In this document: in pieces, positions 13,539 to 18,679 of the stretch
How the letters are laid out: every line of letters begins with the position of its first letter
Numbering within the stretch: the first letter of the stretch is position 1
DNA from: Blastocladiella emersonii ATCC 22665
Lineage: Eukaryota > Fungi > Blastocladiomycota
Direction of reading: 5' to 3'
Length of the DNA: 64,000 nt
Assembly: GCA_025594325.1 (NCBI GenBank)
Contig: JANHCV010000006.1
Location: forward strand, 124,001 to 188,000
Made by a program: the position numbers and the translations under genes
Notes under the pieces: generated by a model
What the model was told of the DNA's origin: nothing
Seen by the model: only the letters and a program-made list of their open reading frames with translations
Database searches by the model: none

Positions 13539-15057
13539 TCACATCAACCATTCTTCAACAGGATCATCGGCAGGACCAACAGCATCAACTTGGATTGCGT
13601 TGACGCGCTGCAGCGCCTTGGGCGCTTGACTGATCCCAGTCGCCTCCTGCGGCGTCAAAGCGGATGCTTGCGGCAGTAGAGCAGGTGCTGATGACGGGCG
13701 GGGCGTGAGGACGAGCGGTACATCAAGCAAACCGTCCTCCTGAAGTTCCAGCAGCGGCGGCGCGAGGAGATCGGTTGTGCGGACGCGCTTCTGACGCTTC
13801 CGTGCTGCAGCTGTGGTGTGCTCAGGTGCGGAGGAGGGGAGCGTGCTCGCAGAGATGGGTGGTGGTGGAACAGCATCGACTTCGACACACGCTTGAGCTT
13901 GCTGCGTTGGAGCCGTCGATGCTGCTGCATGCACCTTGAGCCGGTGGGCGGCGATCGCTGCAGCAAAGGTCGGGTCAACGGGAGGAATCGCGATGACAAA
14001 GTCACGGAGCACGCGTCGCTGCTGAGTGTCGTTGGGGCGGACGCGGACAAGCTTGGAGGCCATAGAGCAGGTTGGTCTGGACGAGAAACGGAAGCGGAGT
14101 TGCAACCCTGGTCCGGTTGCGGCTGCTTCTTCTCCTTGGTGGGAAGCGCGGGCGGCGTCGAGGTAGAGAGCAGCGGAGACGAAGCGGAAGCAGCAAGCGA
14201 ATTGCGAGTGGAGGCAGTGGGGGCCGGTCGCGATGGAGTGGCGGGTAGCGACGGCGACGGTGATGGCGAGGAAGTGGTCCGTGGCGAGGCGGCGCCACCG
14301 TCCCGAGAAGGCGGAAGCGGCGCGACCAAGGAGTCATCACCAAGCGCGAGCGCGCCGGCTTCGGGCTGCGGCACATGACGCTTGCGAACCGTTCTGGTCG
14401 CGACCGGGACACGCCGCTCCCGCGCATCCAGTGCTGCCGGGTCGAGTGCGGGAAGCCTCGGTGGCGGCGGCGGAAGCCCGCGCACCGACATGGGCAAGAT
14501 CCGGGAGACAAGCGATTGGACGCGGGACCGACGCGCGCGCTCGGCCTCGTCAAGCGGAAGCGCACCCAGCAGGCTGGCGGGGCCCTCGACCGACTTGGGC
14601 GTGAGCGGCGGCAGGGGCACTTCGGCCGCGTTGAAGCGAAGCGGCGGGCCCAAGCCAGCGTGGTGGGCGCGGCAGTGAGCGTCGCGCTCGTCCAGGGCCG
14701 CTGCACGCGCATGTACTCGGCCGTGAGCTTGGTGAATCCATCGAGCGCGGCAAGCAGCTTGCGCTCGAGGGTGGCGTTGATAGACTCGCAAGCGGACAAG
14801 GCGGTCTGCGTGGCCTCGAGCTCCTTCTTCGTGAGCTCGTGTTGCTACGATGGCGCGCTGGGGTCAGCGCAGCGCGCCTTGCGCGACACAGGCGATCGTA
14901 CTTGGCGCAACTCGGCGTGTTCTTTCGTGTGCTCCCGCACGGCAGCCAGCTGCTGCTCGACGTGAGCGAACGCGTCGTTGCCCTCGGGTTGAGGGTCAAG
15001 CTGCGCCCGGCCCGCGACGGAAGCCGGCGGCATGAAGCGGGGCGGCGGAGCGATCAT
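13539..15057 (-). pseudogene. Chimeric, apparently frameshifted paralogue of the 15740-18679 gene with a coiled-coil 5' part
   Basis: Canonical 57-nt intron (14901-14845) joins exon 1 to a coiled-coil exon. Similarity to the neighbour then continues in two other frames (ALALGDDSLVAPLPP; RRVLRDFVIAIPP...AAAIAAHRLK; LQRVNAIQVDAVGPADDPVEEWLM*). No canonical intron found to reconcile the frames. Confidence 0.55.
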
Positions 15058-15739: not shown

Positions 15740-18679
15740 TCAACTCAACAATTCATCAACAGGACCGTTCTCGGCATCCAGAACATCGACCTTGCACACC
15801 TCGACGCGCCTGAGCGCGATGGACATGCGCCGGATCCCCGCCGCCTCCTGCGGGGCTGACACGGGCGGCGCCAGCGGCGCTGGCGGAGCGCGCAAACACG
15901 CCGCGTGGGGGGATTCGACAAAGTCCTCGATCGACCCCTCGCTGGGAATCGGGTGAAGCGGCAGCGGGGCGGAGTTCAAGAGCAGCGTCGACCGCCGCCG
16001 CGTTGAGTGCGTGGTGGGCGCGGGCGACTGGGAGCGCGTCGACTTGGGCGCCGGAGCGGCGGGGGTTTGTGTGAGCGCCTGCGATGGCCGTGGTGCCGAG
16101 ACCCGTGGGGTGGAACGACGCGAGGGGACGGCTGCGTGTGTCGATGGCTCCAACTCGAGACGAGGTGGATCCGCGGTGGATGGTGCAGCGGGACCAGCGG
16201 TCAACGGTGCCGCTGGCGACGCGGCAGGCGCAGCTGGGGAGCTCGCGGCGGCGGCGGCGAGCGCGGCGGACTTGGCCTGCGCCCGGGTGCGGCGTGGGAG
16301 CGGTGCGGCGGCCGCACCCACCTGGTCGACGTGTTGCGCGACAGGCTCGCCGCGGTCAGCGACGAGAGCGGCGGCGGGACGCGCTGGTGCAGCTGGTTCG
16401 GCCGACTTGGCGGCAGCGTCCGGAGGTGGACTCGCGCGTGGAACAGAGCAAGGTCTGCCCACGCGACGGGGAGCGGGCGCAGGAAGCGAGGTCTCGAGCG
16501 CGGCCGCGGGCGGTGAAGACGCGAGCACGGTCGACGAGGACGTATCGGCGACCGCTTTGCCTGCACGCGCGCGAGTCGCAGGTTTCGCGGCCGATGATGA
16601 TGCTGCAGCGGTCGAACTCAGCGACGCAGCAGCGTGGGATCGAGGAGGACGGCCGGCGGCGGCGGGTGCGGCGGGATCGGCAGCAGGAACCACGTCCAAA
16701 CTCGCAGCCGAGTCGGTGGGTGCAGTAGCAGCAGCCTCGATCGCGTGCTGCGGGACGCGGCGCGGGCGGCCAGGGCCGCGCTTCGCGGGAGCGACGGGGG
16801 CGAGAACAGCGGGCGCGGGGACGGCGGGTGCGGGCACGTCGGGCCCTGGTGATACGGCTGGAGCTGCGTTCGGTCCCGCGGCCGAGTCGCTGGGCGCAGG
16901 AGCGACAGCAATCGCGACGCTCGGCTGCGGGACGCGACGCGGACGGCCAGGGCCGCGCTTCGCGGGAGCGGCGGGGGCGGGAACAGCGGGAGCGGGAACA
17001 GCGGGAGCGGCGGGGGCGGGAGCAGCGGACGCGAGAGGGTAGGAGCCCGGGACGGCAGCTGTTACTGGCAGTACGGCTGGAACTGCGCTCGGTCCCGCGG
17101 CCGAGTCGGTGGGCGTAGCAGCGGCAGCGATCGCGACGCTCGGCTGCGGGACGCGACGCGGACGGCCAGGGCCGCGCTTCGCGGGAGCGGCGGGGGCGGG
17201 AACAGCGGGCGCGGGGGCAGCAGCGGGTGCGAGCGCGTTGGAGCCCTGGAAAGCAGCTGGCACATGTGCTGCATCTGAGACGGGGCTCGGTTCCGCGGCC
17301 GAGCCAGTGTTCACAACAGCGGCAGCAGTCGCGACGCTCGGCTGCGGAACGCGACGTGGACGACCGCGACCGCGCTTAGCGGCAGCGACGGGCGCGGGAA
17401 CAGCGGGCGCGAGGTGGTCCGAGTCCTGCACGGAAGCCGGCGCTGGCGATACAGCGGCAGCAAAGGCAGCTGCGGCGTTTGCCTGCGTGTTGCGGCGTGG
17501 ACGGCCGCGGCCGCGGGGAGCGGGAGCGGGTGCGACAGCAGCAGGCGCAGGAGCAGGTGCAGGAGCAAGAAACGCGCTTGGTCCCGCGGGCGAGCTAGCG
17601 GGCGCGGCGGCCGACTCCTGCGACTTGCGGCGGTGCGCGGTGACGGCGGCCGCGATCTCGGCCTGGGGGTCGCCGATCGGGATCACAAAGTCCGGGAACG
17701 TGCGCCTTGGCGCGCCGGGCGGCGATCGTAGGGCGACGAGGGCAGCGAAACTCGTGGGATCCAGCCGTTGCCGCTTATTCACGGCGTCGGCAGCGGCGGG
17801 CGCGTCGGCTGCACGAGCGCGTTTCCGCGGCGCGGGTGGCGACGTTGCGACGACAGTGTCGCCCAACACCAACGTCGACGAGGAACACGGCGGGCTCGGG
17901 AGCACGAGCGTCATCGGCGGTCCGTCAACGAGTTCGTCGAACCGCTCGCTCTGGGGGACGGGTCCGGCGTTGGGCGGGAGGATGATAGGCCGGTTGCGCG
18001 AGGCGCGGCGCGGCGGCCGGGGTGCGGGGACACGCGGCGCGTTGGGCATGTGCTGGTGGTGGAGCTCGGCGATCAGGCCGACGAGGTGCGCCTCGTTGTC
18101 CTCGTAGGTGCGGAGGGCGGCGGAGGGCGCAGCAGCGCGAGGGCGCATCGAGACGAGGATGTCCGAGTCGTCCGAGTCGGAGCCCGAGTGCGCGTCGTCG
18201 TCGTCGCCGGAGGAAGATCCCGACTCGGGCGTCCCAGAAGCAGCGTCATCGTCTTCGGCGGCGGACCCTGCCTCCTCGCCGCAGTCGCTCGCACTCGCAG
18301 GCTCCTCCTCTTCCACGGCGTCCGCGTCGCGCCCCCTTGCGAGCGTCCCGAACGCGTACCGGCCGGGCTGGCTCAGGAACCCGCTGCCGGACTCGTCCTC
18401 GTACACGGCGTCGTCGTCGTGGAGGTCGATCTCGACGTCGTCCTCGAACTGGTGCGAGTAGCGGAAGTAGATGTCGTCGAGCTCGGCCTGGAACCGCGAC
18501 ACGGACGCGGCGCGCTGCTTGTGCAGCGGCAGCGCCGGGTCGGGCGGCGGCGGGCACACGAAGCTGCGCGAGGGCACGCCAATGGTGTCGGCGAGACGCA
18601 GCCTCGGCCGCGGCGCCGGCGGGGACGGTGGTGGGGACGGCGTTGGGTCGGGCCGGCGTCGGCGGCGGGGTTGCGTCAT
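15740..18679 (-). CDS. Scm3/HJURP-like CENP-A chaperone domain protein with multiple AT-hooks (979 aa, intronless)
   Basis: aa 47-86 DPALPLHKQRAASVSRFQAELDDIYFRYSHQFEDDVEIDL resembles the Scm3 motif (R..S..RF...I..KY...F...EIDL). AT-hook-like RGRGRPRR x2, KRGPGRPRR x3. Confidence 0.7.
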   Translation of the reverse strand: MTQPRRRRRPDPTPSPPPSPPAPRPRLRLADTIGVPSRSFVCPPPPDPALPLHKQRAASVSRFQAELDDIYFRYSHQFEDDVEIDLHDDDAVYEDESGSGFLSQPGRYAFGTLARGRDADAVEEEEPASASDCGEEAGSAAEDDDAASGTPESGSSSGDDDDAHSGSDSDDSDILVSMRPRAAAPSAALRTYEDNEAHLVGLIAELHHQHMPNAPRVPAPRPPRRASRNRPIILPPNAGPVPQSERFDELVDGPPMTLVLPSPPCSSSTLVLGDTVVATSPPAPRKRARAADAPAAADAVNKRQRLDPTSFAALVALRSPPGAPRRTFPDFVIPIGDPQAEIAAAVTAHRRKSQESAAAPASSPAGPSAFLAPAPAPAPAAVAPAPAPRGRGRPRRNTQANAAAAFAAAVSPAPASVQDSDHLAPAVPAPVAAAKRGRGRPRRVPQPSVATAAAVVNTGSAAEPSPVSDAAHVPAAFQGSNALAPAAAPAPAVPAPAAPAKRGPGRPRRVPQPSVAIAAAATPTDSAAGPSAVPAVLPVTAAVPGSYPLASAAPAPAAPAVPAPAVPAPAAPAKRGPGRPRRVPQPSVAIAVAPAPSDSAAGPNAAPAVSPGPDVPAPAVPAPAVLAPVAPAKRGPGRPRRVPQHAIEAAATAPTDSAASLDVVPAADPAAPAAAGRPPRSHAAASLSSTAAASSSAAKPATRARAGKAVADTSSSTVLASSPPAAALETSLPAPAPRRVGRPCSVPRASPPPDAAAKSAEPAAPARPAAALVADRGEPVAQHVDQVGAAAAPLPRRTRAQAKSAALAAAAASSPAAPAASPAAPLTAGPAAPSTADPPRLELEPSTHAAVPSRRSTPRVSAPRPSQALTQTPAAPAPKSTRSQSPAPTTHSTRRRSTLLLNSAPLPLHPIPSEGSIEDFVESPHAACLRAPPAPLAPPVSAPQEAAGIRRMSIALRRVEVCKVDVLDAENGPVDELLS
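16740..17520. repeat. In-frame tandem repeat array (period ~177-219 bp), each unit carrying one AT-hook
   Basis: KRG[PR]GRPRRV coded at 16757-16783, 16934-16960, 17153-17179 and 17351-17377. Units share long near-identical DNA, e.g. CGCGACGCTCGGCTGCGGGACGCGACGCGGACGGCCAGGGCCGCGCTTCGCGGGAGCGGCGGGGGCGGGAACAGCGGG. Confidence 0.85.

Follow-up and report, generated by a model that had tools for sequence, protein, structure and literature searches.

The abstract of Aravind, Iyer and Wu (2007; Cell Cycle 6:2511) reportedly puts Scm3 proteins, the chaperones of the centromeric histone CenH3, at roughly 200-1300 amino acids (aa). A later paper credits Aravind et al. 2007 with fungal Scm3 homologues that carry AT hooks (PMC8997354). 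Budding-yeast Scm3 has itself been described as "A/T-rich DNA-binding" and is needed to wrap the A/T-rich DNA of CDEII (PMC10476280), its histone-binding domain is followed by a D/E-rich region (PMC12695027), and the AT hook of yeast Mif2/CENP-C reads A/T-rich centromere DNA (PMC5710141). Scm3 domains are ~27% identical even within deuterostomes, and highly diverged members retain three features: a helix, antiparallel to alpha-2 of CENP-A, in which hydrophobic residues recur at intervals of 2-4 positions; a KY dipeptide closing this helix, in which a conservative change of the Lys is tolerated; and, further downstream, a strand element in which E/D residues alternate with I/L/V (PMC13322267). 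Here we describe a gene of Blastocladiella emersonii ATCC 22665, a water fungus (Blastocladiomycota), that very probably encodes the Scm3/HJURP protein of this fungus and that carries a tandem array of AT hooks. The gene lies in a 64,000-nucleotide stretch of contig JANHCV010000006.1 (positions 124,001 to 188,000, forward strand; hereafter the window, to which all coordinates without a contig name refer), which is located on contig C18 of a 32.65-Mb assembly of 21 contigs. That the protein is an Scm3 chaperone with an array of AT hooks, which might bias CenH3 deposition, is the overall explanation that we favor, and we consider it reasonably likely.

A putative Scm3/HJURP orthologue with an AT-hook array

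Positions 15740-18679 of the minus strand form a single uninterrupted open reading frame (ORF) of 979 codons plus stop, counted as 983 codons in a six-frame search of the genome, and this full ORF is the putative Scm3/HJURP orthologue. From the N terminus, the 979-aa protein comprises an Scm3 match, an acidic tract, a long Ala/Pro-rich disordered region containing the hooks and a C-terminal block. Alanine (229 residues) and proline (168) dominate its composition and Ser and Arg are also abundant; the genome as a whole is roughly 65-70% G+C. When the whole protein was scanned against Pfam-A, the only family reported was PF10384 (Scm3) at 18.2 bits, and the scan found no Myb or zinc-finger module and neither the middle nor the C-terminal HJURP domains. 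Separate Pfam scans of aa 121-393 and of the C-terminal 153 aa returned no family.

The PF10384 match comprises aa 53-96 (18392..18523, minus strand) and spans profile positions 2-45 of 53, and it scores 22.4 bits (E 9.9e-5) with aa 1-120 as the query and 23.7 bits (E 0.0014) when all six frames of the genome were searched, where it is the top match; the gathering cut-off for this family is 24.3 bits. The original prediction, which was made from the letters of the DNA, had placed a candidate Scm3 domain at 18541-18422, and the Pfam match, near-threshold and the best in the genome, overlaps this interval and bears it out. At E up to 10, one other PF10384 match was found genome-wide, on contig C9 (19.7 bits, 24 positions), and it was rejected as a second Scm3 locus, its open frame reading as a RasGEF-like catalytic domain. 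A single credible Scm3 candidate is thus found in the genome, alongside a candidate for CenH3. An ESM Atlas feature search with aa 40-115, a method independent of hidden Markov models, pointed to the same family: in each of the best three clusters (scores 0.86, 0.84 and 0.78) 98-100% of the members are PF10384, and the top cluster, auto-named "Myb-like DNA-binding domain protein", is 100% PF10384. We regard the Atlas result as a concordant lead, short of proof.

All three published hallmarks of diverged Scm3 domains are present, in the published order and at the N terminus. The single-sequence AlphaFold2 (AF2) model of aa 40-345 predicts an amphipathic helix at model residues 13-36, that is, aa 52-75 (18455..18526, minus strand), with a predicted local distance difference test score (pLDDT) of about 55-60. 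V60, F63, L67 and I70 lie along one face of this helix, with I70/Y71 as the last position of the hydrophobic spacing, and the helix ends at the dipeptide R73-Y74 (18458-18463, minus strand), the equivalent of KY. The dipeptide is followed by the acidic/short-hydrophobic patch FEDDVEIDL (aa 78-86; 18422..18448, minus strand) at the place of the expected strand element, and the segment as a whole presumably aligns with the "KY...FED" stretch of human HJURP. An acidic tract rich in Asp, Glu and Ser (aa 120-175; 18155..18322, minus strand) lies downstream of the domain. The Pfam match, close to threshold and unsurpassed in the genome, the Atlas lead, the three hallmarks, the N-terminal position, the acidic tract and the presence of a CenH3 candidate together make it highly likely that this gene is the B. 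emersonii orthologue of Scm3/HJURP.

The genome supplies a matching kinetochore context. In addition to four canonical H3 genes it contains a diverged H3 gene, our CenH3 candidate, at C15:561588-562077 (minus strand), with at least three exons and with introns of 82 and 78 nt that both contain CTGAC and GTAG. Read exon by exon, the candidate has a loop 1 two residues longer than that of H3 and an FRWQ signature, and when exon 1 was searched alone its best PDB match was an H3.1/CENP-A chimera. CENP-C is also encoded (CENP-C_C, 80.6 bits), as is one Yippee/Mis18-family protein (37.7 bits). The CenH3 candidate and CENP-C indicate that a CenH3-based kinetochore exists for the chaperone to serve. 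At C1:3640470-3640884 (plus strand) lies another H3-like gene that has diverged strongly; its loop-1 region contains a long insertion, a TAG or an intron falls within the match, and the gene could represent either a further H3 variant or a pseudogene.

Five AT hooks lie in the Ala/Pro-rich region, all encoded on the minus strand. R1 (RGRGRPRR, aa 389-396; 17492..17515) and R2 (KRGRGRPRR, aa 435-443; 17351..17377) are canonical, with an RGRP core, and R3 (aa 501-509; 17153..17179), R4 (aa 574-582; 16934..16960) and R5 (aa 633-641; 16757..16783) share the sequence KRGPGRPRR, a PGRP variant. Two degenerate hooks follow, AAGRPPRS with its GRP at aa 676 (16637..16660) and RRVGRPCS with its GRP at aa 741 (16445..16468). 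At least five hooks had been predicted in this region, in agreement with the five GRPRR motifs and two degenerate GRP sites seen; from the composition of the protein, ~0.005 GRPRR motifs would be expected.

The hooks are carried by a DNA repeat array (16669..17528, minus strand; repeat families D1, D2 and D4) with units of 141-219 nt. Successive hooks are 47, 66, 73 and 59 residues apart, corresponding to units of 141, 198, 219 and 177 nt, every one divisible by three. Family D1 comprises four copies of 173 nt at spacings of 177, 219 and 198 nt with 65-88% identity, and a 46-nt hook core is present in five copies. The R3 and R4 units are 95% identical in nucleotide sequence over 120 nt, the R2 unit is 80-82% identical to R3/R4, and the R1 and R5 units, compared in ungapped register, are far more diverged. 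Of the four hooks predicted to sit in recently duplicated ~200-bp units, a recent origin applies to R3/R4 only, the other units being older. Growth in hook number by repeat duplication, also proposed, is confirmed by comparison of the units, in that the array expanded by in-frame tandem duplication, most recently at R3/R4. The hook repeat unit was found nowhere else in a whole-genome search.

Within the core R-G-x-G-R-P-R-R, seven of eight residues are invariant in all five copies and the sole replacement is R-to-P at x. The nucleotide differences among the invariant codons are all synonymous (GGC/GGT, CGT/CGC, CCA/CCG), and the R5 core differs from the R3/R4 core by two synonymous changes and nothing else. 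Flanks and linkers, by contrast, fall to as little as 38-55% aa identity. Invariant residues with synonymous-only differences, amid linkers that drift, indicate that the hooks are under purifying selection.

Opposite the Ala/Pro-rich repeat region, at 16011-18107 on the plus strand, lie Gly/Ala/Arg-rich antisense ORFs of 343 and 332 aa. They were rejected as genes and result from the bias toward GCN and CCN codons.

A/T-rich satellite arrays and a possible role for the hooks

A survey of A/T content in the initial 10 kb of each of 20 contigs (<1% of the genome) revealed arrays built of 138-bp monomers at the starts of contigs C4, C5 and C19, with periods of 2766, 3124 and ~3049 nt, respectively, and a G+C fraction of 0.52. 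The monomers of the three contigs are related to each other, and their consensus has a G+C fraction of 0.41 (59% A+T) and contains 4-6 A/T tracts of 5-9 bases each, among them ATAATT, ATAAAT, AAAATAT and AAATATA. A/T runs of at least six bases (W6+) occur at ~8/kb in the arrays, versus 1.1/kb in the window and 0.2-0.6/kb at G+C-rich contig starts. At present these arrays are the leading candidates for centromeres. Dense in A/T tracts that are scarce otherwise, they are DNA of the type that a multi-hook protein would be expected to prefer. The copies of the C4 array that were sampled are 100% identical at an offset of 2766 nt.

These elements suggest a mechanism. By homology, the N-terminal Scm3 domain (aa 53-96) would hold a CenH3/H4 dimer and pass it to DNA, and the hooks would let the chaperone bind short A/T tracts multivalently. 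With such tracts apparently scarce genome-wide and dense in the 138-bp monomers of the candidate-centromere arrays, the hooks could bias or stabilize CenH3 deposition at these arrays. Site specificity would probably also need Mis18-type and CENP-C-type partners, since other DNA rich in A/T tracts exists and the hooks alone would lack the specificity. The targeting of AT-rich centromeres by the hooks, as put forward in the original prediction, is plausible in light of the sequence, and we advance a centromere-directing role for them tentatively. An extension of this idea, which we consider unlikely, is that the hook array and the 138-bp satellite form a matched pair, in which the satellites are the centromeres, the multivalent hooks read their tracts and so direct or stabilize the loading of CenH3, and the number and type of hooks (the R3/R4 duplication, the step from R-G-R-P to P-G-R-P) shift by unequal crossing-over with satellite turnover. 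If true, the hooks of this early-diverging fungus, whose satellite centromeres would be of the animal type, would preserve a trace of centromere drive on the chaperone side.

Several observations weigh against the favored explanation, and those that concern the hooks and their targets are considered here, before those that concern the length of the protein and its N-terminal domain. The 138-bp satellite arrays are no more than candidate centromeres. Comparable A/T-richness is found outside them, at the non-satellite start of C17, which has 7.7 W6+ runs per kb, and in a 7.37-kb repeat of C1 with (TA)n runs. The hooks themselves are not uniform: by the usual description of an AT hook, a G-R-P within R-G-R-P with basic flanks, R1 and R2 are full hooks, and R3-R5 keep the G-R-P and the basic flanks, but in them the first Arg of R-G-R-P is replaced by Pro. 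In the HMGA hook the first Arg of R-G-R enters the minor groove. As this is the residue that R3-R5 lack, these hooks may bind more weakly or differently. Finally, the Pfam AT_hook model (PF02178) was not reported in the whole-protein scan at E up to 10. This model is only ~13 residues long and hmmscan filters can drop true hooks, so the missing match counts for little.

An alternative is an Scm3 orthologue in which the hooks are only a general aid to DNA binding or nucleosome assembly, or a nuclear or chromatin tether, and in which the site is chosen entirely by Mis18-/CENP-C-type partners or by pre-existing CenH3. We regard this as a serious possibility, at somewhat under an even chance. The A/T-tract-rich DNA outside the satellites (C17, and the (TA)n of C1) and the non-canonical PGRP of R3-R5 are as it would predict, CENP-C and a Yippee/Mis18 gene are both present, and the hooks would then have a counterpart in the region of budding-yeast Scm3 that binds DNA with a preference for A/T; the intrinsic DNA binding of yeast Scm3 does not define the site (PMC10476280). 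It sits less well with five hooks kept under purifying selection amid fast-evolving linkers, with a repeat unit confined to this one gene, and with satellite monomers that each offer several tracts, an arrangement suited to a multivalent binder.

The survey also yielded observations on other contig ends. The (TA)n microsatellites of C1 are 30-43 bases long and recur every ~7.37 kb throughout C1:1-62500 (G+C 0.52), which points to a long tandem array, possibly of ribosomal DNA, at the start of this contig. A W30 pattern search for A/T islands returned mostly these (TA)n runs and was of no use as a centromere finder. TTAGGG is a common telomere repeat in fungi. At C2:1-889 (~153 copies) and at the start of C11 we found (CCTAAA)n, a six-base telomere repeat of the TTTAGG type. 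C10, C13 and C18 begin within (CTG)n/(CAG)n runs, a hint that trinucleotide repeats are where breaks in the assembly fall.

Length of the product and identity of its N-terminal domain

The public annotation stops the protein at 513 aa. The deposited product, KAI9178707.1 ("hypothetical"), is identical to ORF residues 1-506, departs from the ORF after the K-R-G-P-G of hook R3 and ends after eight out-of-frame residues, and thus conceals three hooks (R3-R5) and the C-terminal block. The 76-nt intron implied by this model (17088..17163, minus strand; GTCCGC...ACCGAG) is probably a prediction artefact. The three introns available as references, defined by homology or reading frame (two in the CenH3 candidate and one in the neighboring gene), all open with a GT(A/T)CG donor, contain CTGAC as the branch site and close with GTAG, whereas the annotated intron has a GTCCGC donor, no CTGAC and the end CCGAG.

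Were the public model correct, the intron would shift the frame to give a 513-aa protein with two hooks and no C-terminal block, and the downstream repeats would be untranslated. This we think improbable. The structure has been deposited and its intron does begin with GT and end with AG; long frames arise readily in 74% G+C DNA, where several opposite-strand ORFs exceed 300 aa; and G+C at third codon positions (GC3) is only 0.63-0.67 in the hook-bearing Ala/Pro-rich region, a value that counts against a coding repeat region. The low GC3 cannot separate the two models, however, because the region includes a part that is coding in the public model too. On the other side, the intron would delete the core of hook R3 and append eight unrelated residues, and it lacks the CTGAC and GTAG of all three reference introns. 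Moreover, R5 differs from R3/R4 by synonymous changes only, the repeat spacings are all multiples of three, and the last 129 codons have a GC3 of 0.79, which is coding-like in comparison with 0.60-0.65 in the flanking intergenic DNA, and an in-frame translation that resembles the neighboring gene. The synonymous conservation of R5, the in-frame repeat lengths, the C-terminal GC3, the C-terminal similarity to the neighbor and the weak intron signals favor a full-length product, and we judge the 979-aa protein likely to be the one made.

The assignment of the N-terminal domain has its own difficulties. Every segment tried scored below the 24.3-bit gathering cut-off of PF10384, though the E-values are significant. 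The Atlas scores of 0.78-0.86 fall below the tool's 0.9 mark, and the top family is shared by only five of the 10 best family-bearing matches. The AF2 models are of low confidence (mean pLDDT 49 for aa 40-345 and 55 for the last 130 aa) and usable for the aa 52-75 helix alone. Comparison with PDB chains by phmmer at E up to 10 returned no Scm3/HJURP chain, the matches being noise for aa 1-120 and nothing for aa 45-105. A HMMER search of aa 40-345 against 1.84 billion representatives found the protein itself alone, as did word-index searches with aa 30-130 of the ORF and aa 45-105 of the 513-aa model. With no relatives, no family alignment, profile-profile comparison or alignment-based fold was possible. 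Given that Scm3 domains share ~27% identity even within deuterostomes, the absence of homologues is weak evidence against membership.

The least probable alternative, that the gene encodes a chromatin protein with AT hooks but no relationship to Scm3, the sub-threshold similarity at the N terminus being due to chance, can draw on Pfam scores that are all <24.3 bits, on the lack of a matching Scm3/HJURP PDB chain and of homologues for profile building, and on the calibration of the Atlas, where a family in only five of 10 best matches is often wrong, but it would leave to coincidence that two independent methods pick the same family among about 25,000, that the HMMER match reaches E 0.0014 across the whole genome in six frames, that three published hallmarks appear in the right order at the N terminus, and that a genome with a CenH3 candidate and CENP-C offers no better Scm3 candidate.

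The neighboring gene immediately downstream (13545-15057, minus strand) shares two blocks with the Scm3-like gene, but contains neither an Scm3 domain nor AT hooks. The middle block (aa 314-358; 17606..17740, minus strand) is 43% identical over 47 aa (tblastn, E 0.005) and the C-terminal block (aa 943-978; 15746..15853, minus strand) 44% identical over 36 aa (tblastn, E 4e-4). The blocks, the C-terminal one measuring 36-96 aa, are collinear in the two genes, their counterparts being found by tblastn at 13545..14051 (minus strand). For the C-terminal block the neighbor is also the top non-self match genome-wide (E 0.013, 37% over 96 aa). The neighboring gene looks like a tandem partial paralogue. 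Its first intron, at ~14845-14900, reads GTACGA...CTGAC...GTAG. An ESM Atlas search with the C-terminal 95 aa gave no usable match and the AF2 model of the last 130 aa showed no structure in the C-terminal block, for which a role in partner binding or dimerization, suggested by analogy to other proteins of the Scm3/HJURP family, is a speculation.

Comparison with known Scm3 proteins and AT-hook proteins

The original prediction had suggested that the combination of an Scm3 domain with AT hooks is not known to have been characterized in zoosporic fungi, and novelty of the architecture is not supported: the fusion is already known in fungi, as credited in PMC8997354, and yeast Scm3 binds A/T-rich DNA (PMC10476280). 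Both the architecture and A/T-DNA binding by Scm3 are in the literature and the protein is not of a new kind; as these are already published, the surprise to a specialist should be modest. What is new here is the lineage, the young tandem-repeat array with its PGRP variant and a corrected public gene model. Our literature search, which left aside the lineages covered by Aravind 2007, found no description of an Scm3-AT-hook protein from Blastocladiomycota and no publication that deals with the centromeres or the Scm3 of B. emersonii. The analysis names a protein that had been deposited in truncated form as "hypothetical protein", extends its gene model and, together with the CenH3 candidate, provides a handle for mapping Blastocladiella centromeres. 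If the arrays prove centromeric, the protein, with A/T-tract readers of its own, would offer a tractable system in which DNA sequence helps a deposition pathway that is otherwise epigenetic.

The closest described relatives are the large fungal Scm3 proteins (Aravind 2007), which reportedly likewise have the Scm3 domain at the N terminus and bear AT hooks in a long C-terminal region that is variable and particular to each lineage. At 979 aa, the B. emersonii protein falls within the range of roughly 200-1300 aa said to hold for the family. It differs from these proteins in coming from Blastocladiomycota, in the young tandem hook array with three PGRP copies, and in that no Myb or zinc-finger module was found. 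With S. cerevisiae Scm3 and human HJURP it shares a short N-terminal domain in which a helix and a K/R-Y dipeptide precede an acidic/hydrophobic strand, with pairwise similarity below phmmer detection. The resemblance to the yeast protein extends to an acidic region after the domain and, given the preference of yeast Scm3 for A/T DNA, to the predicted mode of DNA binding (PMC10476280, PMC12695027). Unlike in yeast, the binding predicted here is by explicit AT hooks, and the B. emersonii genome has long repeat arrays instead of a CBF3-type point-centromere context. HMGA1 and Drosophila D1 are satellite binders with multiple AT hooks. They resemble the B. emersonii protein in that a disordered chain bears several hooks with a GRP core, which suits the binding of repeated A/T tracts, and Mif2/CENP-C sets a precedent for a kinetochore protein that an AT hook helps to read A/T-rich centromere DNA. 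These proteins are not, however, histone chaperones, whereas in B. emersonii the hooks appear to be fused to the CenH3 chaperone itself.

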